From: Ranitomeya imitator
Lineage: Eukaryota
NCBI RefSeq assembly: GCF_032444005.1
Contig: NC_091285.1
Location: forward strand, 240,932,001-240,996,000
Direction of reading: 5' to 3'
DNA length: 64,000 nt
Numbering within the stretch: position 1 is the stretch's first letter; each line of letters opens with the position of its first letter. The notes beneath the pieces were generated by a model, which did not search any database, was not told the origin of the DNA, and saw only the letters and a program-made list of their open reading frames with translations. The translations under genes and the position numbers were made by a program. Of the stretch, positions 21,881 through 45,942 are shown one piece after another.

Positions 21881-22059
21881 AAAATAAACCCTTTCTTGCC
21901 TTGTAGGTTCATTCTACATGAAGGAAAACAACTAAGAATAATGCCGGATGTATTTGGGGAGGTGGCGGAGACATTAAAGTCATAGAGGTTTATCCCAATC
22001 AAATAGAATAGCATGTTTTTTTTTTTTTTTAAGACGTTCGGAGTGACAAAGATATTGAC

Positions 22060-22639: not shown

Positions 22640-22830
22640 CTCGGTCTTCCATGTCGTCGTCTCCAGGGTCGTCGTCTCCAGTGTCGTCATCTCCGCCGTC
22701 GTCGTCTCAGCCGTCGTCGTCTCCGCCGTCGTCGTCTCCGCCGTCGTCGTCTCCGCCGTCGTCGTCGTCATCGGGGTGGTCTTCCGGGTCGTCGTCATCG
22801 GGGTGGTCTTCCGGGTCGTCGACTTTAGGG
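22640..22830. repeat. GTC-rich minisatellite (15-bp GTCGTCGTCTCCGCC-type units plus a 27-bp duplication)
   Basis: Directly visible; produces the TTTAE and SSSPP low-complexity ORFs. Confidence 0.9.
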
Positions 22831-22899
22831 TCTTCAACTTGGAAATGTAGCAGAAGGTACAAGAAGGCTGAGAAAATGCCAAGAACCAGCTGATGGAAC

Positions 22900-25800
22900 T
22901 GGAACTCGGATGGCTACCCGGAGGTTCAAGAGCCTATGGAACTACTGAGGACCAGCTGACGTTACTGGAACCCGGTTACTAAGCAGGAGGTACCCGTGCC
23001 TGAAAGCACTACCAAGGACCACCTGACGTTGGTGGAACTTGGATACCCAGAAGGAGGCACCTAAGCCAAAGGCTCTGCCCGGAACCAGCTGACGGTACTG
23101 GAACCAGGATGGGGAGCAGAAGGTACCAGAGCAAAAGACACTGCCGAGAACCAGCTGACGGTGCTGGAACCAGGTGGTGGACCTGAAGGCCCACAGGAGA
23201 GAAGAGAACAGCTAGGCCGCGAGGCAGCCGCAGTTACCGAACCCCAACAGTCCTACAGGGGGAGCTGGGCCTACTGGCACTACAGAACCAGCCTTGACTA
23301 CCAGTTCACGCAGCCCACATAGGAAGCTCCTAAACTGGAGGCACCCTGGAGTTGGCTAAACCGACCGCACCACGACGGGGCAAGCATAGGCGTCTCAGTG
23401 AACTTGACACAACCCGGAAACAGCTGACGGTGCTGAAACCAGGCTTGGCACGAGGGAGTACCTGTGACAAGAACACTGCCGAGAACCAGCTGGCGGTGCT
23501 GGAACCCAGATGCGTTGCCCCAGTGTGCAAGAGCCAATGGCACCGAGGACCAGCTGGCGGTGCTGGAACCCGGTTACTAAGCTGTAGGTGCCTGCGCTTA
23601 AGAGCACTACCAAGGACCACCTGGCGTTGGCGGAACTCGGATACCCAGGAGGAGGCACCTAAGCCAAAGGCTCGGCCTGGAACCAGCTGACGGTGCTGGA
23701 ACCAGGAGGTGGACCCGAAGGCCCACAGGAGAGGAGAGAACAGCTAGGCCGCGAGGCAGCCGCAGTTACCGAACCCCAACAGTCCTACAGGGGGAGCTGG
23801 GCCTACTGGCACTACAGAACCAGCCTTGACTACCAGTCCACGCAGCCCACATAGGAAGCTCCTAAACTGGAGGCACCCTGGAGTTGGCTAACCCGACAGC
23901 ACCACGACGGGGCAAGCATAGGCGTCTCAGTGAGCTTGACACAACCTGGAAACAGCTGACGGTGCTGAAACCAGGCTTGGCACGAGGGAGTACCTGTGTC
24001 AAAAACACTGCCGAGAACCAGCTGGCGTTGCTGGAACCCAGATGCGTTGCCCCAGTGTGCAAGACCCAATGGCACGACCGAGGACCAGCTGACGGTGCTG
24101 GAACCCGGTTACTAAGCTGTAGGTGCCCGCGCTTAAAAGCACTACCAAGGACCGCCTGACGTTGGCGGAACTCGGATACCCAGGAGGAGGCACTTAAGCC
24201 AAAGGCTCGGCCCGGAACCAGCTGACGGTGCTGGAACCAGGAGGTGGACCCGAAGGCCCACAGGAGAGGAGAGAACAGCTAGGCCGCGAGGCAGCCGCAG
24301 TTACCGAACCCCAACAGTCCTACAGGGGGAGCTGGGCCTACTGGCACTACAGAACCAGCCTTGACTACCAGTTCACGCAGCCCACATAGGAAGCTCCTAA
24401 ACTGGAGGCACCCTGGAGTTGGCTAACCCGACAGTACCACGACGGGGCAAGCATAGGCGTCTCAGTGAGCTTGACACAACCCGGAAACAGCTGACGGTGC
24501 TGAAACCAGGCTTGGCACAAGGGAGTACCTGTGTCAAAAACACTGCCGAGAACCAGCTGGCGTTGCTGGAACCCAGATGCGTTGCCCCAGTGTGCAAGAG
24601 CCAATGGCACGACCGAGGACCAGCTGACGGTGCTGGAACCTGGTTACTAAGCTGTAGGTGCCCGCGCTTAAAAGCACTACCAAGGACCGCCTGGCATTGG
24701 TGGAACTCGGATACCCAGGAGGAGGCACCTAAGCCAAAGGCTCGGCCTGGAACCAGCTGACGGTGCTGGAACCAGGAGGTGGACCCGAAGGCCCACAGGA
24801 GAGGAGAGAACAGCTAGGCCGCGAGGCAGCCGCAGTTACCGAACCCCAACAGTCCTACAGGGGGAGCTGGGCCTACTGGCACTACAGAACCAGCCTTGAC
24901 TACCAGTTCACGCAGCCCACATAGGAAGCTCCTAAACTGGAGGCACCCTGGAGTTGGCTAACCCGACCGCACCACGACGGGGCAAGCATAGGCGTCTCAG
25001 TGAACTTGACACAACCCGGAAACAGCTGACGGTGCTGAAACCAGGCTTGGCACGAGGGAGTACCTGTGACAAGAACACTGCCGAGAACCAGCTGGCGGTG
25101 CTGGAACCCAGATGCGTTGCCCCAGTGTGCAAAAGCCAATGGCACCTAGGACCAGCTGGCGGTGCTGGAACCCGGTTACTAAGCTGTAGGTGCCCGCGCT
25201 TAAAAGCACTACCAAGGACCGCCTGGCGTTGGCGGAACTCGCATACCCAGGAGGAGGCACCTAAGCCAAAGGCTCGGCCTGGAACCAGCTGACGGTGCTG
25301 GAACCAGGAGGTGGACCCGAAGGCCCACAGGAGAGGAGAGAACAGCTAGGCCGCGAGGCAGCCGCAGTTACCGAACCCCAACAGTCCTACAGGGGGAGCT
25401 GGGCCTACTGGCACTACAGAACCAGCCTTGACTACCAGTTCACGCAGCCCACATAGGAAGCTCCTAAACTGGAGGCACCCTGGAGTTGGCTAACCCGACA
25501 GCACCACGACGGGGCAAGCATAGGCGTCTCAGTGAGCTTGACACAACCCGGAAACAGCTGACGGTGCTGAAACCAGGCTTGGCACGAGGGAGTACCTGTG
25601 ACAAGAACACTGCCGAGAACCAGCTGGCGGTGCTGGAACCCAGATGCGTTGCCCCAGTGTGCAAGAGCCAATGGCACGACCGAGGACCAGCTGACGGTGC
25701 TGGAACCCGGTTACTAAGCTGTAGGTGCCCGCGCTTAAAAGCACTACCAAGGACCGCCTGACGTTGGCGGAACTCGGATACCCAGGAGGAGGCACCTAAG

Positions 25801-26200
25801 CCAAAGGCTCGGCCCGGAACCAGCTGACAGTGCTGGAACCAGGTGGTGGACCCGAAGGTCCACAGGAGAGGAGAGAACAGCTAGGCCGCGAGGCAGCCGC
25901 AGTTACCGAACCCCAACAGTCCTACAGGGGGAGCTGGGCCTACTGGCACTACAGAACCAGCCTTGACTACCAGTTCACGCAGCCCACATAGGAAGCTCCT
26001 AAACTGGAGGCACCTTGGAGTTGGCTAACCCGACTGCAACACGACGGGGCAAGCATAGGCGTCTCAGCGAGTTTGACACAACCCGGAAACAGCTGACGGT
26101 GCTGAAACCAGGTTTGGCACGAGGGAGTACCTGTGACAAAAACACTGCCGAGAACCAGCTGGCGGTGCTGGAACCCGGATGCTTTGCCTATCAAACATTG
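22900..26200. repeat. 532/535-bp tandem satellite, about six units
   Basis: Anchor CCTACAGGGGGAGCTGGG at 23252, 23784, 24319, 24854, 25386 and 25921. Units contain CCAGCTGACGGTGCTGGAACC subrepeats. Confidence 0.95.
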
Positions 26201-29200
26201 TCTTCCTACAGCCCCAACTAGCGGTGTTGGAGCAAAGGGTAAGCAGGGGGAGCAGAGTGTAGGCCGAAGCCTGCACTGGAGTCAGCTTTGTGTCTGCGTT
26301 GCGTTTGCAGGACACTTTGCCGGCTACACAGTGGGGGAACAGCAGGCGGTGCTGAACCCCACTAACACATTGGCTGGTGTTTTTCTCTGTGCAGCTAGCA
26401 CTTCCGGGCAAAAACTAGCGTTGTTACAGCCCAGGATCAGCAGGAGGAGGAGAGGAGCAGAGTGTAGGCCGAAGCCTAGTTGAACCAATTTCAAAGGTAA
26501 CCTTTAACCTCCCCTCAGGTGTTACAAAGTACAAGAGCCACACCTTGTGCAGCATTAATGCTGCACAAGAAAAGGTTGCTCTATTAATTTGTCTACTTGC
26601 ACACGCTGAATGCAACACGTACACAATTTAGCCCATTCTACAGTCAAACTGTAGTTGAGGCGTGACTTGTATTTTTAAGGAGACGCAGCATAGGTGTCCC
26701 AAATAACGCCTTTGTGCTAGGCGCTGCTTCCTGAGCGTTGTTTTTTGCTGTACAGGAGTCTGCGCTCTTGTGTTATCCCTTGGCAATGCCCTGTTAGCGC
26801 TGCCCGTCTTATGACCTCATTTCATGTTGGCCGCTGCGGTTAACGATGGCCATAAATCCCAGACCCACACTGCCTTTTCATAAAGTCACACTGCGGTGCT
26901 GGGATTCGTGGCCTTGTGCAGTAAATATTTTCGACGCTCACACACGTCCTTACACCTGCTTCAGACTGGGCGGCCTCTGCTGATCCCTTTTCGCATGCCG
27001 CGGCCAGGAGGCCGCACAGTCTGAAGAAGGCGGAAGGAGATGAGTGACGACAGGCGAACATATGCACTGCTCGTGCCCATAAACCACACCCTCGCTGACA
27101 AAATAAATCAGACAACGAGGGGCGTTGTTTCACGCAGGGCGGATGCACAGGCGCAGCCAGCTAACCATGATGTCAAAAGACGGGAAGCGCTACCAAGGGG
27201 GGTGCTGCGTATCATTAGAAAGGAAAGTCACACCTCAGGGACAGTGGAATGGTCTCAATGAGACACATTTTGTACGTGTTGAGTTCCACGTGGGCAAGGA
27301 GAAAAAGTCAGCCACCTTGTACAAATGCAGCAGTACTGCTGAACAAGGTGGCTGTTATACATAGAAACACCTGGGGGTGGGGGGCAGGCTCCCTTCAATT
27401 TCAGTTCATGTGCCTGCATGGCGTTTGCAGGTCACGTTGCCGGCTACACAGCTGGGGAACAGCTGGCGGTGCTGAACCCCATTAACACATTGGCTGGTGT
27501 TTTTCTCTGTGCAGCTCGCATGTCCGGGCAAAAACTAGCGGTGTTTAAGCCCAGGGTCAGCAGGAGGAGGAGAGGAGCAGAGTGTAGGCCGAAGCCTAGT
27601 TGAACCAATTACAAAGGTAACCTTTAACCCCCCCTCAGGTGTTGCAAGGTACAAGAGCCACACCTCATGCAGCATTAATGCTGCACAAGTAAAAGGTTGC
27701 TCTCTTAATTTTTCTCCTTGCACACGCTGAATAAAACACGTACACTATTTAGCCTATTATACTGTCAAACAGTAGTGGAAGCGTGACTTGTCTTTTTAAG
27801 GAGATGCAGCACAGGTGTCAAAATTAACACCTAGGTGCTGGGCGCAGATTCCTGAGCGTTGTTATTTGCTGTACAGGAATCTGCGCTCTTGTTATCCCTT
27901 GGCCATGCGCTGTGAGCGATGCCTGTCTTCTCACCTCATTTCATGTTGGCCGGTGCGGTTAGCGATGGCCATGAAACCCAGACCCGCAGTGTCTTTTAAT
28001 AAAGTCACACTGCAGAGCTGGGATTCGTGACCTTGTGCAGTAAATTTTGTCGCCTGTCCCTCATGTCCTTACACCTGCATCAGACTGGGCGGCCTCATCT
28101 GATCCCTTCTCGCATGCCGCGGCCATGAGGCCGCACATTCTGAAGAAGGCGGAAGGAGATGACTAAAGACAGGCGAATATATCCACTGCTCGTGCCCATC
28201 AATCACACCCTCGTAGTCAAAATAAGTAAGACAACGAGGAGCGTGGTTTCAGGCAGGGCGGACGCACAGCCGCAGCCAGCCAACCAAAGATGTCAGAAGA
28301 CGGGCAGCGCTAACAAGGGGGGTGCTGCGTGTCATTAAAAAGGAAAGTCACACCTCAGGGACATTGTAATGGTCTGTAATGAGACACATTGTTTACGTGT
28401 TTAATTAAACGTGGGCAAGTAGACAAAGTCAGCCACCTTGTACAAATGCAGCAGTACTGCTGTACAAGGTGGCTGTTATACATAGAAACACCTTGGGGTG
28501 GGTGGCAGGGTCCCTTTAATTTCAGTTCATGTGCCTGCGTGGCGTTTGCAGGTCACGTTGCCGGCTACACAGCTGGGGAACAGCTGGCGGTGCTGAACCC
28601 CACTAACACATTGGCTGGTGTTTTTCTCTGTGCAGCTAGCACTTCCGGGCAAAAACTAGCGGTGTTTAAGCCCAGGGTCAGCAGGAGGAGGAGAGGAGCA
28701 GAGTGTAGGCCGAAGCCTAGTTGAACGAATTTCAAAGGTAACCTTTAACCCCCCTCAGGTGTTGCAAGGTACAAGAGCCACACCTCGTGCAGCATTAATG
28801 CTGCACAAGTAAAAGGTTGCTCTCTTAATTTTTCTCCTTGCACACGCTGAATAAAACACGTACACTACTCAGCCCATTCTACTGTAAAACAGTAGTGGAG
28901 GCGTGACTTGTCTTTTTAAAGAAAAGCAGCCCAGGTGTCGAAAATAACACCTTGGTGCATGGGCTCAGCTTCCTGAGCGTTGTTATTTGCTGTACAGGAG
29001 TCTGCGCTCTTGTTATCCCTTGGCCATGCGCTGTGAGCGCTTCCTGTCTTCTGACCTCATTTCATGTCGGCCGTAGCGATGGAAATGAATCCCAGACTCA
29101 CAGTGTGTTTTCAAAAAATCACACTGCGTGGCTGGGATTCGTGGCCTTGTGCAGTAAATATGTTTGCCGCTCACACATGTCCTTACACCTGCTTCAGACT

Positions 29201-30246
29201 GGGCGGCCTCATCTGATCCCTTATCGCATGCCGCGGCCATGAGGCCGCATAGTCTGAAGAAGGCGGAAGGAGATGAGTTAAGACAGGCGAACATATGCAC
29301 TGCACATGCCCATCAATAACACCCTCGCAGCCAAAATATATGAGACAACGAGGGGTGTTGTGAATTCTGTGGCTGAATTCACTCCTGTGGTCACAAGTGG
29401 TACTGCAGCTTCTGAGCTTCCTCCCTCAGGTGTTCTGGTGAGCTCGTTAACTGCTTCATTACTTAACTCCGCCTGATGCTGCTATCCTTGCTCCTTGTCA
29501 ATGTTTCAGTGTTGGATCTGAGCTTCTCCTGATTGTTCCTGTGACCTGCTGCTCTGTATAGCTAAGTGCTTTTTGCTTTTTTGTTGCTTTTTTTCTGTCC
29601 AGCTTGTCTTTTGTTTTGCTGGAAGCTCTGAGACGCAAAGGGTGTACCGCCGTGCCGTTAGTTCGGCACGGTGGTTTTTTTGTGCCCCCTTTGCGTGGTT
29701 TTGCTTTAGGGTTTTTTGTAGACTGCAAAGTTCGCTTTACTGTCCTCGCTCTGTCCTAGAATATCGGGCCCCACTTTGCTGAATCTATTTCATCCCTACG
29801 TTTTGTCTTTTCATCTTACTCACAGTCATTATATGTGGGGGGCTGCCTTTTCCTTTGGGGAATTTCTCTGGGGCAAGTCAGGCCTATTTTTCTATCTTCA
29901 GGCTAGCTAGTTTCTTAGGCTGTGCCGAGTTGCCTAGGTAGTTGTTAGGCGCAATCCACAGCCGCTTTTAGTTGTGTTTAGGATAGGATCAGGTGTGCAG
30001 TCTACAGAGTTTCCACGTCTCAGAGCTCGTTCTTGTATTTTTGGGTATTTGTCAGATCACTGTGTGCGCTCTGATCGCTATGCACACTGTGTTTCTGGAT
30101 TGCCTTCATAACACCTGTCATTAGCAAACATAACAGTACAAGGAGCCAAACTAATGATTCTCAATAGAGGGAAAGAAAAAGTTCTGACATCATTTTTTTT
30201 TTTTTCTGCTCTGTGTTCACTTTTTTTTTTTCCCCTAGACATTTAG

Positions 30247-31395
30247 GTGATTCTGGACACAGGTGTGGACATGGATATTCAGGGTCTGTGCTCTTCAATG
30301 GATAATCTCGTTATAAATGTACAAAAAATTCAAGATACTATTGATCAGAAATCTATGTTAGAACCAAGAATTCCTATTCCTGATTTGTTTTTTGGAGATA
30401 GAACTAAGTTTCTAAGTTTCAAAAATAATTGTAAGCTATTTCTGGCCTTGAAACCTCATTCTTCTGGTAATCCTATTCAACAGGTTTTGATTATTATTTC
30501 TTTTTTGCGCGGCGACCCTCAAGACTGGGCATTTTCTCTTGCGCCAGGAGACCCTGCATTGAGTAGTGTCGATGCGTTTTTCCTGGCGCTCGGATTGCTG
30601 TACGATGAGCCTAATTCAGTGGATCAGGCTGAGAAAAATTTGCTGGCTTTGTGCCAGGGTCAGGATGATATAGAAGTATATTGTCAGAAATTTAGGAAAT
30701 GGTCAGTACTCACTCAGTGGAATGAATCTGCGCTGGCAGCTTTGTTCAGAAAGGGTCTCTCTGAGGCTCTTAAGGATGTCATGGTGGGATTTCCTATGCC
30801 TGCTGGTTTGAATGAGTCTTTGTCTTTGGCCATTCAGATCGGTCGACGCTTGCGCGAGCGTAAATATGTGCACCATTTGGCGGTACTGCCTGAGGTTAAA
30901 CCTGAGCCTATGCAGTGCGATAGGACTATGACTAGAGTTGAACGGCAGGAATACAGACGTCTGAATGGTCTGTGTTTCTACTGTGGTGATTCCACTCATG
31001 CTATTTCTGATTGTCCTAAGAGCACTAAGCGGTCCGCTAGGTCTGCCGTCATTGGTACTGTACAGTCCAAATTCCTTCTGTCCATTACCTTGATATGCTC
31101 TTTGTCGTCGTTTTCTGTCATGGCGTTTGTGGATTCGGGCGCTGCCCTGAATCTGATGGATTTGGATTATGCTAAACGTTGTGGGTTTTTCTTGGAGCCT
31201 TTGCGGTGTCCTGTTCCATTGAGAGGAATTGATGCTACACCTTTGGCCAAGAATAAACCTCAATACTGGGCCCAGCTGACCATGTGCATGGCTCCTGCAC
31301 ATCAGGAAGTTATTCACTTTCTGGTGTTGCATAATCTGCATGATGTGGTCGTGTTGGGGATCTGGTTTGGTTATCTTCTCGTCATATTCCTATGA
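30247..31395 (+). CDS. Ty3/Gypsy Gag-protease (382 aa), ending just past a deletion junction
   Basis: Retrotransposon gag (PDLFFGDRTKF..F), LCFYCGDSTHAISDC knuckle and FVDSGA protease. Confidence 0.9.
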   Translation: MILDTGVDMDIQGLCSSMDNLVINVQKIQDTIDQKSMLEPRIPIPDLFFGDRTKFLSFKNNCKLFLALKPHSSGNPIQQVLIIISFLRGDPQDWAFSLAPGDPALSSVDAFFLALGLLYDEPNSVDQAEKNLLALCQGQDDIEVYCQKFRKWSVLTQWNESALAALFRKGLSEALKDVMVGFPMPAGLNESLSLAIQIGRRLRERKYVHHLAVLPEVKPEPMQCDRTMTRVERQEYRRLNGLCFYCGDSTHAISDCPKSTKRSARSAVIGTVQSKFLLSITLICSLSSFSVMAFVDSGAALNLMDLDYAKRCGFFLEPLRCPVPLRGIDATPLAKNKPQYWAQLTMCMAPAHQEVIHFLVLHNLHDVVVLGIWFGYLLVIFL

Positions 31396-31934
31396 AGGTT
31401 TCCTCTCCTAAATTTAAACCTCGTTTTATTGGTCCGTATAGGATTTCTGAGGTTCTCAATCCTGTGTCTTTTCGTTTGACCCTCCCAGACTCCTTTTCCA
31501 TACATAATGTATTCCATAGGTCGTTGTTGCGGAGATACGTGGCACCTATGGTTCCATCTGTTGAGCCTCCTGCCCCGGTTTTGGTGGAGGGGGAATTGGA
31601 GTATATTGTGGAGAAGATTTTGGATTCTCGTGTTTCTAGACGGAAACTCCAGTATCTGGTTAAATGGAAGGGTTATGCTCAGGAAGATAATTCCTGGGTT
31701 TTTGCCTCTGATGTTCATGCTTCCGATCTTGTTCGTGCCTTTCATGCGGCTCATCCTGGTCGGCCTGGGGGCTCTGGTGAGGGTTCGGTGACCCCTCCTC
31801 AAGGGGGGGGTACTGTTGTGAATTCTGTGGCTGAATTCACTCCTGTGGTCACAAGTGGTACTGCAGCTTCTGAGCTTCCTCCCTCAGGTGTTCTGGTGAG
31901 CTCGTTAACTGCTTCATTACTTAACTCCGCCTGA
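31392..31934 (+). CDS. Integrase C-terminal GPY plus chromodomain fragment
   Basis: PRFIGPYRI, IHNVFHRSLL, EYIVEKILDSR..QYLVKWKGY..DNSWV; the frame runs into the 3' LTR. Confidence 0.75.
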   Translation: MKVSSPKFKPRFIGPYRISEVLNPVSFRLTLPDSFSIHNVFHRSLLRRYVAPMVPSVEPPAPVLVEGELEYIVEKILDSRVSRRKLQYLVKWKGYAQEDNSWVFASDVHASDLVRAFHAAHPGRPGGSGEGSVTPPQGGGTVVNSVAEFTPVVTSGTAASELPPSGVLVSSLTASLLNSA

Positions 31935-33985
31935 TGCTGCTATCCTTGCTCCTTGTCAATGTTTCAGTGTTGGATCTGAGCTTCTCCTGATTGTTCCTGT
32001 GACCTGCTGCTCTGTATAGCTAAGTGCTTTTTGCTTTTTTGTTGCTTTTTTTCTGTCCAGCTTGTCTTTTGTTTTGCTGGAAGCTCTGAGACGCAAAGGG
32101 TGTACCGCCGTGCCGTTAGTTCGGCACGGTGGTTTTTTTTTGCCCCCTTTGCGTGGTTTTGCTTTAGGGTTTTTTGTAGACTGCAAAGTTCGCTTTACTG
32201 TCCTCGCTCTGTCCTAGAATATCGGGCCCCACTTTGCTGAATCTATTTCATCCCTACGTTTTGTCTTTTCATCTTACTCACAGTCATTATATGTGGGGGG
32301 CTGCCTTTTCCTTTGGGGAATTTCTCTGGGGCAAGTCAGGCCTATTTTTCTATCTTCAGGCTAGCTAGTTTCTTAGGCTGTGCCGAGTTGCCTAGGTAGT
32401 TGTTAGGCGCAATCCACAGCCGCTTTTAGTTGTGTTTAGGATAGGATCAGGTGTGCAGTCTACAGAGTTTCCACGTCTCAGAGCTCGTTCTTGTATTTTT
32501 GGGTATTTGTCAGATCACTGTGTGCGCTCTGATCGCTATGCACACTGTGTTTCTGGATTGCCTTCATAACACCTGTCATTAGCAAACATAACAGAGGGGC
32601 GTTGTGTTGGGCAGGGCGGACGCACAGGCACAGGCAGCCAACCAATGATGTCAGAAGACGGGCAGCGCTACCAAGGGTGGTGCTGCGTATCATTAGAAAG
32701 GAAAGTCACACCTCAGGGACAGTTGAATGGTCTCAATGAGACACATTTTGTACGTGTTGAGTTCCACGTGGGCAAGGAGAAAAAGCCAGCCACCTTATAC
32801 AAATGCAGCAGTACTGCTGTACAAGGTGGCTATTATACATAGAAACACCTGGGGGTGGGGGGCAAGCTCCCTTCAATTTCAGTTCATGTGCCTGCGTGGC
32901 GTTTGCAGGTCACGTTGCAAGCTACACAGCAGGGGAACAGCTGGCGGTGCTGAACCCCACTAACACATTGGCTGGTGTTTTTCTCTGTGCAGCTAGCAAT
33001 TCCGGGCAAAAACTAGCGGTGTTAGAGCCCAGGGTCAGCAGGAGGAGGAGATGAGCAGAGTGTAGGCCGAAGCCTCCACTGGTGGCAGCTTTTGGTTGGT
33101 TGTGCCAGCGTGGCTTGTGCTGGACACGATGCCGGCTACACAGCAGGGGAACAGCTGGCGGTGCTGAACCCCACTAACACATTGGCTGGTGTTTTTCTCT
33201 GTGCAGCTAGCAATTCCGGGCAAAAACTAGCGGTGTTAGAGCCCAGGGTAAGCAGGAGGAGGAGATGAGCAGAGTGTAGGCCGAAGCCTCCACTGGTGGC
33301 AGCTTTTGGTCGGTTGTGCCAGCGTGGCCTGTGCTGGACACGATGCCGGCTACACAGCAGGGGAACACCTGGTGGTGCAGAACCCCACTAACACATTGGC
33401 TGGTGTTTTTCTCTGTGCAGCTAGCACTTCAGGGCAAAAACTAGCGGTGTTAGAGCCCAGGGTCAGCAGGAGGAGGAGAGGAGAAAAGTGTAGGCCGAAG
33501 CCTAGTTGAACCAATTTCAAAGGTAACCTTTAACCCCCCCTCAGGTGTTGCAAGGTACAAGAGCCACACCTTGTGCAGCATTAATGCTGCACAAGTAAAA
33601 GGTTGCTCTATTTAGTTTGCTCCTTGCACACGCTGAATAAAACACGTACACTATTTAGCCCATTATACTGTCAAACAGTAGTGGAGGCGTGACTTTTCTT
33701 TTGAAGAAGACGCAGCACAGGTGTCAAAATTTACACCTAGGTGCTGGGCGCAGACTCCTTACCGTTGTTATTTGCAGTATAGGAGAGTGCGCTCTTGTGT
33801 TATCCCTTGGCAATACCCTGTTAGTGCAGGCCGTCTTATGACCTCATTTCATGTTGGCCGGTGCGGTTAACGATGGCCATAAATCCCAGACCCACAGTGC
33901 CTTTCCATAAAGTCACACTGCGGTGCTGGGATTCGTGGCCTTGTGCAGTAAATATGTTCGCCGCTCACACATGTCCTTACACCTG

Positions 33986-34875
33986 AGTACACATATATAT
34001 AACAATGAACATATAGTGTGCATTACCAAATTATACTAAACCTATAACATAATGCACAACTCATAAAATCATGATAAACATAACTTTATTAATCATAAAA
34101 ATATCACATAACATAAATGAAAGGGAAAAACAAAATCAGGTGGAAAAAGGGGTACGGGGTAACACAGAGACCAAGATAGCATGTATTATGACTCATACAT
34201 TATAAAAAAGTTTTCAAATAAACATCAAAATACATGCACATAATAATTTCAGCATAAGTATCCATAATATGTAGAGATGACAATATCGTCTATAATGGGA
34301 TCATCAGCTATAAATTACTATAAGGCACCACAAATAATCATGGTGCCACAAAGTATATCGTTCCAGAGAAATTAATAGTGCAAAAATGCTGTTCAATATA
34401 AGGCAATAATATAAATGAAATACCGTACAGAAGAAATTGTATCAAAATCAGAAACTGTGTGCACAAATTATTATAATAATAAAATACAACTATCTATATG
34501 GCAGCACAGTATAAATATTGCACATTAGATCCATCTAGCAGCAAAACAAGGCTGCTTGTACAGCAGTATCATGCGAATAGCAGCGTAATTCAATCATAAA
34601 TATAGCAGCACAGCACAGTGTAATTTAAATATATAAAAAACCCATAAAGCAGACAGAAAAACGGCTGTGTAGAGCGATGGAATACTTAACTGTATGAGTG
34701 GTCCCGTGATAGCCCGCACCCGCCCGACGCGCGTTTCGCCTGAGCTTTGACGTACCCCTTTTTCCACCTGATTTTGTTTTTCCCTTTCATTTATGTTATG
34801 TGATATTTTTATGATTAATAAAGTTATGTTTATCATGATTTTATGAGTTGTGCATTATGTTATAGGTTTAGTATA
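33986..34875. mobile_element. Penelope-like AT-rich insertion with a 15-bp TSD and ~127-bp inverted repeat
   Basis: ATGTCCTTACACCTG occurs at 33971-33985 and 34876-34890. Sequence ~34040-34166 is the reverse complement of ~34751-34877. Minus-strand GGCGAAACGCGCGTCG at ~34725-34740. Confidence 0.65.
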
Positions 34876-37800
34876 ATGTCCTTACACCTGCTTCAGACTG
34901 GGCGGCCTCAGCTGATCCCTTATTGCCTGCCACGGCCATGAGGCCGCACAGTCTGAAGAAGGCGGAAGGAGGGGAGTGAAGACAGGCGAACATATGCACT
35001 GCTCGTGCCCATCAATCACACCCTCGCAGTCAAAATATATGAGACAACGAGGGGCGTTGTGTCGGGCAGGGCGGACGCACAGGCACAGCGAGCCAACCAA
35101 TGATGTCTGAAGACGGGCAGCGCTAACAATGGGGGTGCTGCGTGTCATTAAAAAGGAAAGTCACACCTCAGGGACATTGTAATGGTCTCTAATGAGACAC
35201 ATTTTGTACGTGTTGACTTCCACGTGGGCAAGGAGAAAAAGTCAGCCACCTTGTACAAATGCAGCAGTACTGCTGTACAAGGTGGCTGTTATACATAGAA
35301 ACACCTGGGGGTGGGGGGCAGGGTCACTTCAATTTCAGTTCATGTGCCTGCGTGGCGTTTGCAGGACACGTTGCCAGCTACACAGCAGGGGAACAGCTGG
35401 CGTTGCTGAACCCCACTGACACATTGGCTGGTGTTTTTCTCTGTGCAGCTCGCATGTCCGGGCAAAAACTGGCGGTGTTCGAGCCCAGGGTCAGCAGGAG
35501 GAGGAGAGGAGCAAAGTGTAGGCCGAAGCCTGCACTGGTGGCAGCTTTTGGTCAGTTGTGCCAGCGTGGCTTGTGCTGGACACGATGCAGGCTACACAGC
35601 AGGGGAACAGCTGGCGGTGCTGAACCCCACTAACACATTGGCGGGTGTTTTTCTCTGTGCAGCTAGCAATTCCGGGCAAAAACTAGCATTTTTAGAGCCC
35701 AGGGTCAGCAGGAGGAGGAGAGGAGCAGAGTGTAGGCCGAAGCCTGCACTGGTGGCAGCTTTAGATCAGTTGTGCCAGCGTGGCTTGTGCTGGACACGAT
35801 GCCGGCTACACAGCAGGGGAACAGCTGGCGGTGCTGAACCCCACTAACACATTGGCGGGTGTTTTTCTCTGTGCACCTAGCACTTCCAGGCTACAACTGG
35901 CGGTGTTATAGCCCAGGGTCAGCAGGAGGAGGAGAGGAGCAGAGTGTAGGCCGAAGCCTAGTTGAACCAATTTCAAAGGTAACCTTTAACCCCCCCTCAG
36001 GTGTTGCAAGGTACAAGAGCCACACCTTGTGCATCATTAATGCTGCACAAGTAAAAGGTTGCTCTTTTAATTTTGCTCCTTGCACATGCTGAATAAAACA
36101 CGTACACTATTTAGCCCATTCTACTGTAGAACAGTAGTGGAGGCGTGACTTGTCTTTTTAAAGAAAAGCAGCACAGGTGTCGAAAATAACACCTTGGTGC
36201 ATGGGCGCAGCTTCCTGAGCATTGCTATTTGCTGTACAGGAGTCTGCGCTCTTGTTATCCCTTGGCCATGCGCTGTGAGCGCTTCCTGTCTTCTGACCTC
36301 ATTTCATGTTGCGTTGCGGTTAGCGATGGACATGAATCCCAGACCCACAGTGTGTTTTCTAAAAATCACACTGCGTGGCTGGGATTCGTGGCCTTGTGCA
36401 GTAAATATGTTTGCCGCTCACACATGTCCTTACACCTGCTTCAGACTGGGCGGCCTCATCTGATCCCTTATCGCATGCCGCGGTCATGAGGCCACCCAGT
36501 CTGAAGAAGGCGGAAGGAGATGAGTGAACACAGGCAAACATATGCACTGCACATGCCCATCAATCACATCCTCGTTGTCCAAAAAAATAAGACACAGAGG
36601 GGCGTTGTTTCGAGCAGGGCAGATGCACAGGCGCAGCCAGCTAACCAATGATGTCAAAACACGGGCAGCGCTAACAAGGATGGTGCTGCGTATCATTAGA
36701 AAGGAAAGTCACACCTCAGGGACAGTGGAATGGTCTCAATGAGACACATTTAGTACGTGTTTAATGAAACGTGGGCAAGGAGAAAAAGTCAGCCACCTTA
36801 TACAAATGCAGCAGTACTGCTGTACAAGGTGGCTGTTATACATAGAAACACCTGGGGGTGGGGGGCAGGCTTCCTTCAATTTCAGTTCATGTGCCTGCGT
36901 GGCGTTTGCAGGACACGTTGCCAGCTACACAGCAGGGTAACAGCTGGCGTTGCTGAACCCCACTGACACATTGACTGGTGTTTTTCTCTGTGCAGCTCGC
37001 ATGTCCGGGCAAAAACTGGCGGTGTTCGAGCCCAGGGTCAGCAGGAGGAGGAGAGGAGCAAAGTGTAGGCCGAAGCCTGCACTGGTGGGAGCTTTTGGTC
37101 GGTTGTGCCAGCGTGGCTTGTGCTGGACACGATGCCGGCTACACAGCAGGGGAACAGCTGGCGGTGCTGAACCCCACTAACACATTGGCTGTTGTTTTTC
37201 TCTGTGAAGCTCGCATTTCCGGGCAAAAACTAGCGGTGTTAGAGCCCAGGGTCAGCAGGAGGAGGAGAGGAGCAGAGTGTAGGCCGAAGCCTAGTTGAAC
37301 CAATTTCAAAGGTAACCTTTAACCCCCCCTCAGGTGTTGCAAGGTAGAAGAGCCACACCTTGTGCAGCATTAATGCTGCACAAGTAAAAGGTTGCTCTAT
37401 TTAGTTTGCTCCTTGCACACGCTGAATAAAACACGTATACTATTTAGCCCATTAAACTGTCAAACAGTAGTGGAGGCGTGACTTGTCTTTTTAAGGAGAC
37501 GCAGCACAGGTGTCAAAATTTACACCTAGGTGGTGGGCGCAGATTCCTGAGTGTTGTATTAGCTGTACAGGAGTCTGCGCTATTGTGATCCCTTGGCCAT
37601 GCGCTCTGAGCGCTGCCTGTCTTCTCACCTCATTTCATGTTGGCCGTTGCGGTTAGCAATGGATATGAATCCCAGGCCCACAGTGTGTTTTCAAAAAATC
37701 ACACTGCGTGGCTGGGATTCGTGGCCTTGTGCAGTAAATATGTTTGCCGCTCACACATGTCCTTACACCTGCTTCAGACTGGGCGGCCTCAGCTGATCCC

Positions 37801-40800
37801 TTATCGCCTACCACGGCCAGGAGGCCGCACAGTCTGAAGAAGGCGGAAGGAGATGAGTTAAGACAGGCGAACATATGCACTGCACATGCCCATCAATCAC
37901 ACCCTCGCAGCCAAAATATATGAAACGAGGGGGGTTGTGTCGGGCAGGGCGGACGCACAGGCACAGGCAGCCAACCAATGATGTCAGAAGACGGACAGCG
38001 CTACCAAGGGGGGTGGTGCGTGTCATTAAAAAGTAAAGTCACACCTCAGGGACATTGTAATGGTCTGTAATGAGACACATATTTTACGTGTTTAATTAAA
38101 CGTGGGCAAGTAGACAAAGTCAGCCACCTTGTACAAATGCAGCAGTACTGCTGTACTAGGTGGCTGTTATACATAGAAAGACCTGGGGGGGTGGGGCCAG
38201 GTTCCCTTTAATTTCAGTTCATGTGCCTGCCTGGCCTTTGCAGGTCACGTTGCCGGCTACACAGCAGGGGAACAGCTGGCGGTGCTGAACCCCACTAACA
38301 CATTGGCTGGTGTTTTTCTCTGTGCAGCTAGCACTTCCGGGCAAAAACTAGCGGTGTTTGAGCCCAGGGTCAGCAGGAGGAGGAGAGGAGCAGAGTCTAG
38401 GCCGAAGCCTGCACTGGTGGCAGCTTTTGTTCTGTTGTGCCAGCGTGGCTTGTGCTGGACACGTTGCCGACTACACAGCAGGGGAACAGCTGGCGGTGCT
38501 GAACCCCACTGACACATCACCTAGTGTTTTTTCTGTGTAGACAACACTTCCAGGTGGCAACTGACAGTGTTGAAACCCAGGGAATCAAAGAGGAGCAGAG
38601 TGTAGGCCGAAGCCTGCAGTGGAGCAAGTTGAAAGGGAACCTTTAACCCCCCCCCCCAGGCATTTGTTGCTGAAAGAGCCATCTTGTACAGCAGTAATAC
38701 TGCACATGGAAAATGGTGGTTTCGAAAATTATGCTCCTTGCAAACGCTGAAGTACACACTCATATAATGTGTCCCCTCACACCGTCAAACCATCCCGGAA
38801 GTGGGACTTTCCTTTGTAATGTGACACAGCACAGCCGTCATTCCAACCCCCTTGGTGCCGGGCGCCACCTCCTCAACGTTGTTTGGTTCTGTCACGGAGC
38901 CCGCGCTGTAATGTTATCCCTTGGCCATGCACAGTTAGCGGTGCCCGTCTTCTGACATCATGTAGGTGTCAGGCTGGCAGTGCCTGTGCGTCCAAGCTGC
39001 CCGAGATCCAACCTTGCAGTGTAATCTAATGTAGTCCCACTGCGGGCCAGGGATCCATGGGCATGCGCAGTGCATATCATCGCCTCTCACTCACCTCCTT
39101 CCTGCTTCTTCAGACTGTGCGGCGTCACGGCCGTGGCATGCTATTAGGGATCAGCTGACGCCGCCTAGTCTGAAGAAGCGTGAAGAAGGGGAGTGAGAGG
39201 CTAGTATATGCACTGCGCATGGCCATGGATACCAGGCCCACTGTGGGATCACATTAGACGACACTGCGAGGTGTGATTTTGGGCAGAGTGGACGCACAGG
39301 CGCAGCCAGGACGACAACAAATGATGTCAGAGGACGGGCAGCGCAAACTGTGCATGGCCAAGGGATAACATAACAGCGCAGGGTCCATGACGGAATCAAA
39401 CAACTCTAAGGAGGCAGCGCACGGTGCCAAGGAGGTAGCAATGACGGCTGTGCTGCGTCACATTACAAAGGAAAGTCCCACCTCCGGGACGGTTGGACGG
39501 TGTGAGGGGACACATTACATGAGTGTGTAGTTCAGCGTTTGCAAGGAGCATAATTTCAAGAGCGACCTTTCCCTTGTGCAGTATTAGTGCTGCACATGGT
39601 GGCTCTTTCAGTAACAAACGCCTAGGGGGGGGACAGGTCCCCTTACATTTTAGTTGTGCCAGCGTGGCGGTCGCATGACACGTTGCCGGATACACAGCTG
39701 GGGATCAGCTGACGTTACTGAACCCCAATAACAGAGGAGCGACTGTTGACTGTGCACACAGCACTTCCAGGCACCAACTGGCGGTGTTGGAGCCCAGGGA
39801 CAGCAGGAGGAGCAGATTGGAGGTATTGCCGCACACACAGCTGGGGATCAGCTGACGTTACTGAACCCCAATAACAGAGGAGCGACTGTTGACTGTGCAC
39901 ACAGCACTTCCAGGCACCAACTGGCGGTGTTAGAGCCCAGGGACAGCAGGAGGAGCAGATTGGAGGTATTGCCGCACACACAGCTGGGGATCAGCTGACG
40001 TTACTGAACCCCAATAACAGAGGAGCGACTGTTGACTGTGCACACAGCACTTCCAGGCACCAACTGGCGGTGTTAGAGCCCAGGGACAGCAGGAGGAGCA
40101 GAGGAACAGAGTGTAGGCCGAAGCCTGATTGGAGCAAGTTGAAAGGGAACCTTTAACCCCCCCCCCAAGACGTTTGTAGCTGAAAGAGCCATCTTGTGCA
40201 GCACTAAGGATGCAAAAGGAAAAGGTGGTTCTTTTAATTATGCTCCTTGCAAACACCGAAGTAAACACTAAAAATGTCCCGGAGGTGCGAATTTCCTTCG
40301 TAATGGGACACAGCACAGCTGTCATTCCTATCCCCTTGGTGCCGTGCGCTGCCTCCTCAGCGTTGTTTTAAGCTGTCACGGAGCCTGCGCTGTTCTGTTA
40401 GCCCTTGGCCATGCCCAATTAGCGCTGCCTGTCTTCTGACATAATTTGGTGTCAGGCTGTCAGTGCCTGTGCGTCCACGCTGCTCCAGATCCCACCTCGC
40501 AGTCTCGTCTAACGTAATCCCACTGCGGGCCTTGGAACCATGGGCATGCACAGTGCATATCCTCGACTCTCACTCCCCTCCTTCCCTCTTCTTCAGACTG
40601 TGCGGTGTCACGGCCGTGGCATGCTATTAGGGATCAGCTGACGGCGCACAGTCTAAAGAAGGCGGAGGGAAATGAGCGAGACCCCGAGGGGAAGATATGC
40701 ACTGCGCATGCCCATGGATCCCAGGCCCACAGTGTGACTCAATCAGAAGACACTGCGAGGCGGGATCTCGGGCAGCGCGGCCGCACAGGCGCAGCCAGCC

Positions 40801-41352
40801 TGACACCAAATTATGTCAGAAGACAGGCAGCGCAAATAGGGCATGCCCAAGGGATAACAGAACAGCGCAGGCTCCGTGACAGCTTAAAACAACGCTGAGG
40901 AGGCAGCGCATGGCACCAAGGGGGTAGGAATGACGGCTGTGCTGCGTCACATTACGAAGGAAAGTCCCAGCTCCGGGACAGTATAACGGTATCAGTGACC
41001 ACATTTTATAAGTGTTAAGTTCTGCGTGTGCAAGGAGCTAAAAAAAAAGAGCTACCTTTTCCTTGTGCAGCATTACTGCTGCACAAGATGGCTCTTTCAG
41101 TAACAAACGACGGGGGGGGGACAGGTTCCCTTACATTTAGGTTGTTGTGCCAGCGTGGCGGTCACAGGACACATTGCCGGCTACACAGCTGGGGATCAGC
41201 TGACGTTACTGAAACCCAATAACACTGGGTCGTATGTTTTTACTGTGCAGCCTGCACTTCTGAGCCGCAACTGGCGGTGTTGGAGCCCAGGAATAGCAGT
41301 TCAGGTGGTAGAAAGATGAACACAGCAGGAGACCTGGATGACACCCAATTAC

Positions 41353-44300
41353 TTAATCAGGCAGAGGAGTGGCAAATTCCTGCGAGATCCAGGCCTGGTT
41401 CATTTTCAGGAAAGTAAGCCGGTCAATGTTATCGGAGGATAGTCGCATGCGACGGTCTGTTAGTACACCACCTGCGGCACTAAAGACACGTTCCGATAAG
41501 ACACTAGCCGCAGGGCAAGCCAGCACCTCCAATGCATACTGGCTTAGCTCTGGCCATGTATCCAGCTTAGAGACCCAAAACTTGAACGGGGAAGAGCCGT
41601 CTGGGAGTACAGTAAGAGGGCATGCCATGTAGTCTGTCACCATCTGACGGAACCGTTGCCTCCTGCTGACTGGAGCCGCCGGTGATGGTGTAGACATTTG
41701 GGGCGGGCACACAAAAGTGTGCCAGAGTTGTGCCATACTGGGCTTGCCTTGGGCAGAGGCACTGCTTCTGCACCCTCTTTGGGCAGAGCCTCCCCCACTG
41801 CCTCGACGCACTGAGCTGCTTTGTAAAGCACTAGCAGCACTCCTCTCAGTTGGACAGGAGAAGATGATGGAATTCACCAGTGTGTCGTGGTACTCCCGCA
41901 ATTTACGCTCCCGGGTCAACACAGGGATGAGGTTCTGGACGTTGTCCCGGTAGCGAGGATCGAGGAGGGTGAACACCCAATAATCAGGCATGTTGAGAAT
42001 GTGGTCGATGCGGCGGTTGTTTCTCAGGCACTGCAGCGTGAAATCCACCATGTGCTGCAGAGTGCCAACTGGCCCAGAAACGCTGTCCCCTGCTTGAGAC
42101 ATGATCTCTGCCCGCTCGTCATCACCCCACCCTCGCTGTACACACTGACCACTGGACAATTGTGTCGCTCCCTCCTCTGGACGGAGCTCTTCCTCCTCCA
42201 TTGACTCCTCCTCATCCTCCTCACAAATTGGCCCCTGCGTACCCCTTTGTGAGGAACCACGTGGTGCTGACTCTCCAGAAGCTGATGGAAAAGGTGACTC
42301 CTCATCCTCCACCTCTTCCACAACATCATCCCTTAACCCTTGCAAAGTTTGCTGAAGCAGGCAGATAAGGGGGACAGTCATGCTGACTAGTGCATCATCT
42401 GCACTTGCCATCCGCGTGGAATAATCAAAAGGACGCAAAACCTGGCAGACGTCCTTCATAGTGGCCCACTCTATGGTTGTGAAGTCTGATCGGCGCTGAC
42501 TGCGACTTCTTTGCGTCTGATGCAGCTGGTACTCCATAACTGCTTGCTGCTGCTCACACAACCGCTCCAACATATGTAACGTGGAATTCCACCGGGTAGG
42601 TAGGTCACATATGATGCGGTGTTCCGGAAGGCGGAATCGGCGCTGCGGAGCAGCAATGCGGGATCTGGCCAAGCTGGAACGCCGCAAGTGAGCACACTCT
42701 AGGCGGACCTTGTGCAGCAGGGCATCAAGATCCGGATAGTCCCTCAGAAAACTCTGCACAACCAAATTGAGCACATGTGCCAGACATGGGATGTGAGTGA
42801 GGTTGCCAAGGGCCAAAGCTGCCACCAGATTTCGGCCATTGTCACACACTACCATGCCTGGCTGGAGATTCGCTGGCAGTAACCACACATCGCTCTCCTG
42901 CTTGATGGCATTCCAGAGCTCCTGCGCTGTGTGGCTTCGATGCCCCAATGAAACTAGTTTCAAGACGGCCTGCTGACGTTTGGCCACGGCTGTGCTCATG
43001 TCGGTCATAGGTAAACGTTCACGGGTCCATGTGGAGGTGGACTGTGACGGATCCTGCAGAGAGGAATCTGAGGAACTGGTGTAAGAGGAGGAGTCGATGC
43101 GTACAGACTGGATTCCTGCAATCCTTGGAGTGGGCAGGACACGTCCTGCGCCACTCGCACGATCTGTACCTGGCTCAACAACATTAACCCAATGGGCAGT
43201 GAGGGAAACATATCGCCCCTGTCCATGCTGACTGGTCCACGCATCGGTGGTGAGGTGGACCTTGCTACTGACGGCGTTCAGTAGCGCATGTTTTATGTTT
43301 GCCTCAACATGCCTGTGCAGGGCAGGGACAGCCTGCCTGCTGAAGTAAAAGCGGCTGGGCACCTTGTACTGTGGGACTGCCAATGCCATCAAGTCACGGA
43401 AGCTGTCAGTCTCCACCAGCCTGAACGAGAGCATTTCCAGGGACAAAAGTTTGGCAATACCTGCATTCAGAGCCTGTGCTCGGGGGTGGTTGGCCGAGAA
43501 TGCCCGCCTTTTCTCCCATGCCTGTACTACCGATGGCTGTAGAGTAGACTGGGAGTGTGAGGATGACTGGGAAGGTGGTGCTGTGGGTGGAATTACACAA
43601 GGTCTATGGACAACAGTGCCAGAGGTTCTTCCATGGCGATCCTGGGAGGAAGCCAAACCAGCTGTGCGTGAGCTGGAGGAAGAGGCAACACGAGCTGAAG
43701 AGGTGGTAGCTGCCACTGTTGGTTGGCCTACATCTTCAGTCTGTTTCTGTAACTCCACCGCGTGCCTGGTCCGCACATGTTTCCACATATTTGTGGTATT
43801 GAGGTTGCTGACATTTTTCCCTCTTTTTACTTTCTGATGACACAGCTTGCATTTGACAAAACAAATGTCATCTGCAACTGTGTCAAAAAAGGACCAGGCA
43901 CTGCAAGTCTTGGGAGCGCCCTTTTTGGCTTTGGAAAGAGACAGGCTCCTAACGGGTGCCAAAGTGGAGGCTACAGGCTCCGCAGTCTTCCCCCTCCCTC
44001 TCCCTCTTTGGCCCGTAAGGGTAAGCTCTTCCTCAGAGCTGCTCCCACCACCTTCCTGTTCCTCACGCCACGATGGGTCAAGGACCTCATCATCTCCACT
44101 ACCCTCTGCCACCAACTGCTCCTCCTGGGTAGTCTCGGCAGCACAGTACGCATCAGAAAGCGGCACCTGAGTTTCATCATCAGATGCGTACTGCGCTGTG
44201 GTCGCCGGAGGCACTGGCCCACCTGCCTCTTCAGAGTCAGAGAGAAAAAGCTGTTGGGCATCACTGCACACTGCCTCTTCTTCCATTTCTCCAATGCTGC

Positions 44301-44697
44301 TTGGCTGGCCCCCTGTTTTCAAGCCAAGAGATTCAGAGAACAGAAGTAGAGACGGCTCCTGTCCTGGGCTCTCTGACTGCCTGGCCAATTTGGCAGGTGG
44401 TGAAGAGACAGATGGCTGCTCTCCAGTGCTCTGTGCCTGAGAGGATGTGGCACTAACTGAAGTCGATGCCGAGGCGTTAGCTGCCATCCACCCGACAACG
44501 GCTTCAATTTGGTCTTCACGCAGCAGCGGTGCACGGCGCTCTCCGACAAAGCTGCGCATGAAGGACTGTTCCCTGCTGAAACTGAGTGACGACGAGTCAC
44601 CGGCGCCTGCAGCAGGCACAGAATCACCACGTCCTCTCCCTGCTCCTCTCCCTGCTCCGCGCCCACGCCCACGTGCCTTACTCCCTGCCCTCTTCAT
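41353..44697 (-). CDS. hAT transposase with BED zinc finger (1114 aa, intact)
   Basis: BED finger AWSFF..KCKLC..NTTNMWKHVRTRH; VHLTTDAWTS (D), VVCDNGRNL (D), PCLAHVLNL (CxxH), DLPTRWNST and CPAASVLSERVFSAAG (E, dimerisation domain). No stops. Confidence 0.96.
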   Translation of the reverse strand: MKRAGSKARGRGRGAGRGAGRGRGDSVPAAGAGDSSSLSFSREQSFMRSFVGERRAPLLREDQIEAVVGWMAANASASTSVSATSSQAQSTGEQPSVSSPPAKLARQSESPGQEPSLLLFSESLGLKTGGQPSSIGEMEEEAVCSDAQQLFLSDSEEAGGPVPPATTAQYASDDETQVPLSDAYCAAETTQEEQLVAEGSGDDEVLDPSWREEQEGGGSSSEEELTLTGQRGRGRGKTAEPVASTLAPVRSLSLSKAKKGAPKTCSAWSFFDTVADDICFVKCKLCHQKVKRGKNVSNLNTTNMWKHVRTRHAVELQKQTEDVGQPTVAATTSSARVASSSSSRTAGLASSQDRHGRTSGTVVHRPCVIPPTAPPSQSSSHSQSTLQPSVVQAWEKRRAFSANHPRAQALNAGIAKLLSLEMLSFRLVETDSFRDLMALAVPQYKVPSRFYFSRQAVPALHRHVEANIKHALLNAVSSKVHLTTDAWTSQHGQGRYVSLTAHWVNVVEPGTDRASGAGRVLPTPRIAGIQSVRIDSSSYTSSSDSSLQDPSQSTSTWTRERLPMTDMSTAVAKRQQAVLKLVSLGHRSHTAQELWNAIKQESDVWLLPANLQPGMVVCDNGRNLVAALALGNLTHIPCLAHVLNLVVQSFLRDYPDLDALLHKVRLECAHLRRSSLARSRIAAPQRRFRLPEHRIICDLPTRWNSTLHMLERLCEQQQAVMEYQLHQTQRSRSQRRSDFTTIEWATMKDVCQVLRPFDYSTRMASADDALVSMTVPLICLLQQTLQGLRDDVVEEVEDEESPFPSASGESAPRGSSQRGTQGPICEEDEEESMEEEELRPEEGATQLSSGQCVQRGWGDDERAEIMSQAGDSVSGPVGTLQHMVDFTLQCLRNNRRIDHILNMPDYWVFTLLDPRYRDNVQNLIPVLTRERKLREYHDTLVNSIIFSCPTERSAASALQSSSVRRGSGGGSAQRGCRSSASAQGKPSMAQLWHTFVCPPQMSTPSPAAPVSRRQRFRQMVTDYMACPLTVLPDGSSPFKFWVSKLDTWPELSQYALEVLACPAASVLSERVFSAAGGVLTDRRMRLSSDNIDRLTFLKMNQAWISQEFATPLPD

Positions 44698-44910
44698 CTT
44701 GGTTGACAGATAAAGATAAGCAGAAAAGTACTAAGGCCTTAGTGTGCTTATTCCTGAAATGCTCCTCCTAACAGGTGTAAGAAACACTAATGTTGTAAAG
44801 TGTGGACTAAACTTTAATATTTTTCAAATGTGGCCTACACAAGTGTTAAGTTGTGTTTGGTGAACTTTATTTTTTTTTTGTGCAGATCGGGCTACAGAGC
44901 TAGTTTAAAT

Positions 44911-45939: not shown

Positions 45940-45942
<3 letters not shown>

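Follow-up and report, generated by a model that had tools for sequence, protein, structure and literature searches.

The window analysed here is a 64,000-nucleotide stretch of the Ranitomeya imitator genome (contig NC_091285.1, positions 240,932,001 to 240,996,000), and its central part is occupied by a transposon of the hAT superfamily. Approximately 45% of this 24.7-kb element (~11 kb net of two nested insertions) is a tandem array of eight units, each including a foldback cassette that resembles MITEs (miniature inverted-repeat transposable elements) of another superfamily (Table 1). The 8-bp target-site duplication (TSD), GTGTGGAC, is identical in 8/8 positions between the two flanks of the element, and the 11-bp terminal inverted repeats (TIRs), TAGTGTTGAGC, match in 11/11 positions at the two ends. 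Of the 61 ATCGG/CCGAT repeats in the window, 11 and 9 are subterminal, within 200 bp of one or the other terminus. The transposase open reading frame (ORF) predicts a protein with a zf-BED domain (PF02892, 3.8e-08) and a Dimer_Tnp_hAT domain (PF05699, 7.6e-14), and the closest named proteins are Ranitomeya ZBED-like models with 85% identity. The features that define the hAT superfamily, namely an 8-bp TSD, short TIRs with subterminal repeats, and a BED domain with a C-terminal hAT dimerisation domain, are all present, and the element is complete and predicted to be autonomous. Because the TSD and TIRs are perfect and the ORF is intact, the copy in the window appears to be a young insertion. 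The edge of the array lies 13 bp past the transposase stop codon, which places the array in the 3′ non-coding part of the element, where an initial annotation made from the sequence had put it.

Two other repeats are located within the element. A 260-bp × 3.5 tandem array (96% matches) at 44892-45951 separates the transposase start codon from the 5′ TIR, in the presumed leader or promoter region, and short repeats of the GTCGTCGTCTCC type with 15-, 27- and 41-bp periods are found at 22195-22831, just within the 3′ end. The ORFs in the latter region are repeat-frame artefacts, and a scan of the left arm and the cassettes found only repeat-frame ORFs, none of them convincing.

Table 1. Positions of the hAT element, the components of its internal array and related features in the window
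Feature	Position	Strand	Details
Complete hAT element	21745..46422	-	24,678 bp; 20.5 kb minus two nested insertions
Left TSD	21737..21744	n/a	GTGTGGAC
Right TSD	46423..46430	n/a	GTGTGGAC
hAT transposase ORF	41353..44697	-	1114 aa, uninterrupted; Pfam matches
hAT's own 66-bp/535-bp tandem field	23003..26188	+	has CAGCTGRCGGTGCTGRAACC motif in common with spacers
Array of eight tandem units, each a foldback cassette with its spacer(s)	26216..41340	+	self-BLAST, left-end 17-mer, unit lengths
Cassette c1	26495..27394	+	900 bp; ends AGGTAACC..GGCTCCCT; flanks TCAA/TCAA
Cassette c2	27615..28515	+	flanks ACAA/TTAA
Cassette c3	28736..32872	+	split by long terminal repeat (LTR) element 29356-32594; flanks TCAA/TCAA
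Cassette c4	33521..35328	+	split by 891-bp insertion 33986-34876; flanks TCAA/TCAA
Cassette c5	35977..36875	+	flanks TCAA/TCAA
Cassette c6	37310..38207	+	flanks TCAA/TTAA
Cassette c7	38634..39643	+	1010 bp; ends AGGGAACC..GGTCCCCT; flanks TGAA/TACA
Cassette c8	40144..41131	+	988 bp, best preserved; ends AGGGAACC..GGTTCCCT; flanks TGAA/TACA
Spacer monomers, example 3 x 214 bp	32887..33503	+	Tandem Repeats Finder, anchors, motif scan
Other 214-bp spacer starts	26289, 27409, 28530, 35343, 35557, 35771, 36890, 37104, 38222, 38436
143-bp spacer variant	39683-40102; final spacer 41146-41300
Ty3/gypsy chromovirus, internally deleted, in c3	29356..32594	+	3.2 kb; 781-bp LTRs; TSD AGGGG
AT-rich insertion in c4	33986..34876	n/a	891 bp; 14-bp flanking duplication TGTCCTTACACCTG
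Free, truncated T2-type MITE (right half)	50901..51299	+	end ..CAGGTTCCCT followed by TTAA

Self-BLAST of the region from 24 to 46 kb revealed a head-to-tail array that extends from 26216 to ~41300, with periods of 1120-1333 bp in the left and middle parts and ~1500 bp at the right end. A 17-mer from the left end of the cassettes, AAAGGKAACCTTTAACC, occurs exactly eight times in the window when ≤1 mismatch is allowed, always on the + strand and within the array (26493, 27613, 28734, 33519, 35975, 37308, 38632 and 40142). Measured from left end to left end with the two secondary insertions taken out, the units are 1120, 1121, 1541, 1552, 1333, 1324, 1510 and 1197 bp long, and the array comprises 10,983 bp net of the nested insertions. 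These values demonstrate the anatomy of the array and agree with the eight units of 1.1-1.5 kb between 26210 and 41340 described initially. Each unit consists of one 0.9-1.0-kb cassette followed by 1-3 spacers, whose monomer length is 214 or 143 bp, and the order along the array is S c1 S c2 S c3 SSS c4 SSS c5 SS c6 SS c7 S'S'S' c8 S'. Neither chance nor duplication during assembly explains the array, because the units differ from one another by 6-34% and independent sequencing runs carry the same sequences. A head-to-tail, higher-order organisation is present, but "satellite", the word used initially, overstates the case for eight units (11 kb net) that are known here only inside the hAT element.

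The cassettes are non-coding inverted-repeat sequences with the ends AGG(G/T)AACC...CCCT, and their length of 0.9-1.0 kb is close to the maximum for MITEs. No ORF of >131 aa was found in any cassette by the ORF scan, and a search of 20-52 kb against Rfam at the gathering threshold gave no match. In c8, the foldback spans the first to the last base with arms that are 81-88% complementary, and the predicted folding energy of the single-stranded DNA is -436 kcal/mol compared with -157 ± 6 in shuffled sequences (z -43). The terminal motif is AGGGA in c7, c8 and the free copy described below, and AGGTA, one change from AGGRR, in c1-c6. Subterminal motifs are present in every unit, as first described, but the exact strings given for them hold only in part: AGGGAACCT is exact in c7 and c8, where c1-c6 carry AGGTAACCT, and an exact GCTGCACAAGGTGGCT is confined to position 51241, in the free copy. 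With motifs that are approximate in most cassettes, "decayed" was an apt description of the ends.

The T2 MITEs of frogs combine a TTAA target with terminal AGGRR and are hence taken as non-autonomous partners of Kolobok elements (PMC6004289). Outside of the hAT element, a MITE end flanked by TTAA had been noted at 51180-51299, and this end is real, with CCCT directly followed by TTAA at 51295/51296-51299. A second free T2-type end with TTAA lies at 50655-50667, so that 2/2 free T2-type ends in the window (50655-50667 and 51287-51299) have CCCT followed by TTAA. Alignment of c8 with the free fragment 50901-51295 extends over 413 bp (66% identity, E 1e-23), and the likeness expected between the units and the free copy thus goes well beyond terminal motifs. 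The more decayed c1 and c6 align with it over the terminal ~95 bp and short inner pieces. No relative of the cassettes was found in the window beyond the array other than the fragment at 50901-51299. The flanks of the cassettes include no clean TTAA/TTAA pair and are consistent with, though no proof of, decayed TTAA. Together, these features support the identification of the cassette as a putative foreign foldback MITE of the T2 type. The T2 identity proposed initially is supported by the AGGRR motif and by TTAA at the free ends, and the Kolobok parentage is presumed from the end signature only; no Kolobok transposase is present in the window.

Two other origins of the cassette were considered and rejected. 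The termini of piggyBac elements are CCC...GGG beside TTAA, and the ends observed here are AGGG...CCCT beside TTAA. A hAT-type MITE was suggested by an apparent 8-bp duplication, CAATTTCA, beside c1-c6; this was discounted because the target reads CAATTT-CAATTT, c7 and c8 are without the duplication, and the free relatives have TTAA.

The two free right ends (..GACAGGTTCCCT followed by TTAA) belong to different T2-type MITEs, at 50500-50668 and 50901-51299, that are 630 bp apart. The second of them is truncated at 50901, and the region resembles a site of clustered TTAA-MITE insertions, located outside the hAT element.

All eight cassettes occupy the same site relative to the spacers. A 214-bp spacer is made up of a 189-bp core and a 25-bp linker, and the 143-bp variant adjoins c7 and c8. 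In 8/8 cases the cassette begins 17-18 nt past the core end GTGTAGGCCGAAGCCT, and its other end is 11-14 nt ahead of TGTGCC, with which the next core starts. When the cassette and a 4-bp duplication are removed, 25-27 bp of linker remain, and an empty linker between two spacers is 25 bp. Since these lengths agree, the cassette is an insertion into the linker of a pre-existing repeat, and a single insertion site is demonstrated for all eight units. The flanking 4-mers resemble a TTAA duplication that has decayed, with changes that are common within lineages. In addition, 8/8 left ends read CCTTTAACC, and the right ends of the same cassettes and both free copies read CCTGTC(A/C)CC (CCTGTCACC); the altered left end is a derived asymmetry shared by all eight cassettes. 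Because the site is identical, the flanking 4-mers are shared and look decayed, and the change in the left TIR is common to 8/8, one insertion followed by tandem amplification, as the initial annotation had proposed, is favoured.

The cassettes fall into two lineages, the order of whose divergence is clear. Pairwise identities are 88-94% within c1-c6, 84% between c7 and c8, and 66-70% between the lineages, equivalent to divergences of 6-12%, 16% and 30-34%; in the alignment used, the joins of c3 and c4 are off by 1-6 bases, with no effect on the results. The tree recovered c1-c6 (100/100) as a star-like group that includes (c3,c5) (96/99), and (c7,c8) (92/91); it has one free outgroup only, and therefore provides no test of monophyly against dispersed copies.

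The explanation that we prefer, with a probability of roughly 0.8, is that one T2-type MITE inserted once into the repeat field in the 3′ part of the hAT element, was amplified there together with its neighbouring spacers, and has been carried as cargo by the element. Two or more independent insertions, in which related T2 MITEs hit a TTAA-like hotspot in different spacers (at least once each for c1-c6 and c7-c8) and were then duplicated, are an unlikely alternative that draws on the divergence data. T2/Kolobok elements are TTAA-specific, and repeated monomers repeat the same target. The distance between the lineages (66-70%) equals that between c8 and the free copy (68%), and the MITE parts differ more between lineages (~69%) than the spacers do (76-80%). 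However, the orientation and the inserted position are identical to the base on both sides in 8/8 cassettes, the flanking linkers are homologous between the lineages (~60-65%), and 8/8 left ends have CCTTTAACC in place of the CCTGTCACC of the free copies and of their own right ends.

Several observations weigh against a single insertion and its spread as cargo. The one free relative in the window is only 60-68% alike and points to no source subfamily. Cassette c8 is equally far from the free copy (68%) and from c1-c6 (68-70%); the common origin of the two lineages is therefore argued from the site and the left-end change, and not from the tree. The flanks are TCAA or ACAA on the left and TCAA or TTAA on the right of c1-c6, and TGAA/TACA in c7 and c8, with no TTAA/TTAA, and the linker sequence next to the cassettes is much diverged from that of empty linkers. 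The Kolobok link of the cassettes would derive from end signatures and nothing else. In the sequencing data considered below, contigs of the c1-c6 type are not assignable to single cassettes, the presence of these in master copies is not individually demonstrated, and contig depth does not equal copy number.

The spacers are related to a repeat field that belongs to the hAT element itself and adjoins the array. The 66-bp and 535-bp arrays at 23003-26188 have the motif CAGCTGRCGGTGCTGRAACC as their core. With ≤4 mismatches allowed, it occurs in 46 copies from 23152 to 41288, exclusively on the + strand, and a ~35-bp version of it is present twice in every spacer. For the clearest motif copy in each spacer type, local alignment gave scores of 38 and 32, and shuffled sequences reached at most 22 and 24. 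Since the motif is common to both and lies on one strand throughout, the spacers are assigned to the hAT repeat field. The amplified module is a higher-order unit made up of the MITE and the neighbouring spacer monomers. This supports the insertion of a MITE into the hAT element as claimed initially and refines the claim, in that the landing field existed beforehand and the unit is the MITE with 1-3 spacers.

The motif CAGCTGRCGGTGCTGRAACC is itself a small CAGC...GCTG hairpin of ~21 nt that recurs in the 66-, 535-, 214- and 143-bp repeats of the element, and it could serve the hAT family as a site of protein binding or as a structural unit.

The spacers also bear on whether the MITE could have been part of a host tandem repeat before the hAT element took that repeat up, for instance through template switching in gap repair. 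Elements of the hAT superfamily and other cut-and-paste elements are able to acquire foreign DNA, and alternative unit orders in other runs, such as 41294>37267, could stem from arrays elsewhere. Such a capture is nevertheless quite improbable, as the spacers carry the ~35-bp motif of the adjacent 66/535-bp hAT field on the same strand and continuously from 23152 to 41288. No array outside of the hAT element turned up, though no search for one was made.

Sequencing runs provide the evidence on mobility. Between 64 and 85% of sampled words from 38400-44400 are contained in 20 runs (7 studies, 3 organisms), and the positive runs include some of 5-50 million letters, which are able to assemble high-copy sequence only. 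Contig positions only were used, and depth was not taken as copy number. Over 36900-42899, contigs of organisms A, B and C span c7, c8, the spacers and the ORF, and each aligned piece has 1-7 differences. Cassettes c7 and c8, the spacers and the junction between array and ORF are ≥99% identical in contigs of the three organisms, and the junction (41184-41886) is bridged by record 22 of X3 (703 bp) and record 30 of X8 (641 bp). The sequence in the window differs from every contig at 39023, 39433, 40682, 40729, 40980 and 40999 in c7/c8, and at 41427, 41623, 41772 and other positions in the ORF. Private differences are alike in the two regions, which are therefore copies of a single family sequence and of equally young age. 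Joints within contigs include 39494>40988, which skips exactly one unit, and 38618>41141, which skips c7 and c8; such joints are the variation in unit number that is expected of a recombining array, in other copies. These data support the assignment of the array to a multi-copy hAT family, with c7, c8 and the junction demonstrably carried as cargo, and the initial description of the hAT element as a mobile vehicle for the array is upheld to this extent.

The array also appears to be older than the insertion that carries it. Because the units differ by 6-34% yet the TSD, TIRs and ORF are intact, it probably grew in ancestors of the copy in the window. Expansion at the locus after the hAT copy had inserted, suggested by the local growth of tandem arrays in general and by unit numbers that vary between copies, is scarcely credible given this divergence within an element whose TSD and TIR are perfect and whose ORF is intact, and is largely refuted for c7/c8 by their ≥99% identity, with the junction, in contigs of three organisms, very small runs included.

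Under the preferred explanation of a single insertion, a ~1-kb foldback T2 MITE (AGGRR, TTAA; presumed to be a non-autonomous Kolobok element) would have entered the hAT element in a single event, in its 3′ non-coding part. The tandem field was already there, and the MITE would have landed in a 25-bp linker that joins two of its monomers. The spacer monomers on either side of the MITE are direct repeats that supply homology for exchange, and the block of MITE and spacer(s) could have been multiplied by unequal exchange, slipped replication or slipped gap repair; we infer such a recombination mechanism for the amplification. At least three stages are indicated. An old duplication would have produced the two lineages that are now 66-70% alike, one of these would then have duplicated to give c7 and c8 (84% alike), and the other would have expanded rapidly into the six copies c1-c6 (88-94% alike). 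Master copies of the hAT element already contained c7 and c8, the spacers next to them and the array/ORF junction at the least, and these parts have been carried passively to many genomic sites, as a hAT transposase needs only the ends of the element. The cassettes themselves are probably no longer able to move independently. The copy in the window later received the LTR element and the 891-bp insertion.

Transitions from MITEs to tandem repeats are well documented, including Xstir from the T2 MITE Xmix (PMC6004289), miDNA4, DTC84, Tetris and pearl-type elements. The T2 MITEs of Xenopus, and Xmix/Xstir in particular (Hikosaka & Kawahara; PMC6004289), are like the cassette in having AGGRR, free copies with TTAA, an inverted-repeat structure and a link to tandem repeats. 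They differ in that amplification affects an internal segment, which stays within the MITE and is carried by it (PMC6004289), whereas here the unit is a whole MITE with a spacer and rides in a transposon of another superfamily. The cassettes, at ~1 kb, are also long for a MITE. The comparison with the Xenopus subfamilies is one of features and not of sequence. Tetris in Drosophila virilis is likewise a foldback transposon that feeds a satellite, with arrays spread by transposition (PMC4079207), and in DTC84 (Donax) and miDNA4 (X. tropicalis) MITE sequence has given rise to tandem arrays spread in the same way (PMC3879986; PMC9659126). In these three, however, the source of the arrays is the TIR or core of the non-autonomous element itself, which also spreads them; in the window, the vehicle is a predicted autonomous hAT element and the module is a nested element of another superfamily.

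Repeats in the non-coding parts of autonomous transposable elements (TEs) are also dispersed with the TE in the case of PisTR-A in the 3′ untranslated region (UTR) of Ogre and ENSAT1 in the 5′ UTR of Atenspm (PMC9659126). FEDoR, a DNA element of the frog Rana temporaria, has tandem repeats enclosed by paired inverted repeats (PMC12054243), but has 22-bp monomers and no ORF (PMC12054243). The monomers of Ogre, Atenspm and FEDoR are short and home-grown, and none of these has been described as an entire MITE of foreign origin that was amplified as a higher-order unit. The genome paper on the dyeing poison frog does not mention satellites or MITEs for its hAT content. A literature search found no case in which a complete MITE of a foreign superfamily in an autonomous hAT element became the unit of a higher-order array and was dispersed by that element, which is no proof of absence. 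The arrangement is thus a neat but not unprecedented route by which transposons breed and spread satellite-like DNA.

The locus presents the nesting of DNA transposons and the growth of a MITE into a tandem array in a clean and datable combination, the outcome of which is a higher-order repeat copied around a giant frog genome by a predicted autonomous element. Elements of this kind enlarge the genome with each transposition event and spread ready-made starting points for satellite arrays and long palindromes that could prove fragile or recombinogenic. For annotation, repeat maskers would call the interior Kolobok/T2 and "unknown satellite", and its membership in the hAT element would be missed. 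The hAT element is multi-copy and apparently active, and its eight cassettes are downstream of the stop codon of the transposase. If they were transcribed in the 3′ UTR of the transposase, the hairpins might form long double-stranded RNA, feed small-RNA pathways and tune the silencing of the hAT element or of related T2/Kolobok MITEs, so that the array would be a built-in trigger and not inert cargo, a speculation that we regard as very doubtful.

Of the two insertions nested in the array, the chromovirus in c3 is young. Its LTRs are identical at 780/781 positions, a 5-bp TSD (AGGGG) is present, and its ORFs predict only gag/zinc-knuckle and integrase-SH3/chromodomain products. The 891-bp insertion in c4 includes 127-nt arms that are 100% complementary (34030-34156 and 34751-34877), the left of which starts 45 bp inside the insertion, and the 14-bp duplication that flanks it, TGTCCTTACACCTG, is unusually long.

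Downstream of the free MITEs, fragments of a Ty3/gypsy pol gene (RNase H and integrase) were detected at 53715-55727, within another TE region at 52486-55727. A CR1/L2-like long interspersed nuclear element occupies 58734-62605 and has an intact-looking endonuclease-reverse transcriptase ORF of 926 aa (59825-62605), which is preceded at 58734-59687 by an ORF with a GDSL-lipase/OSK-like domain.

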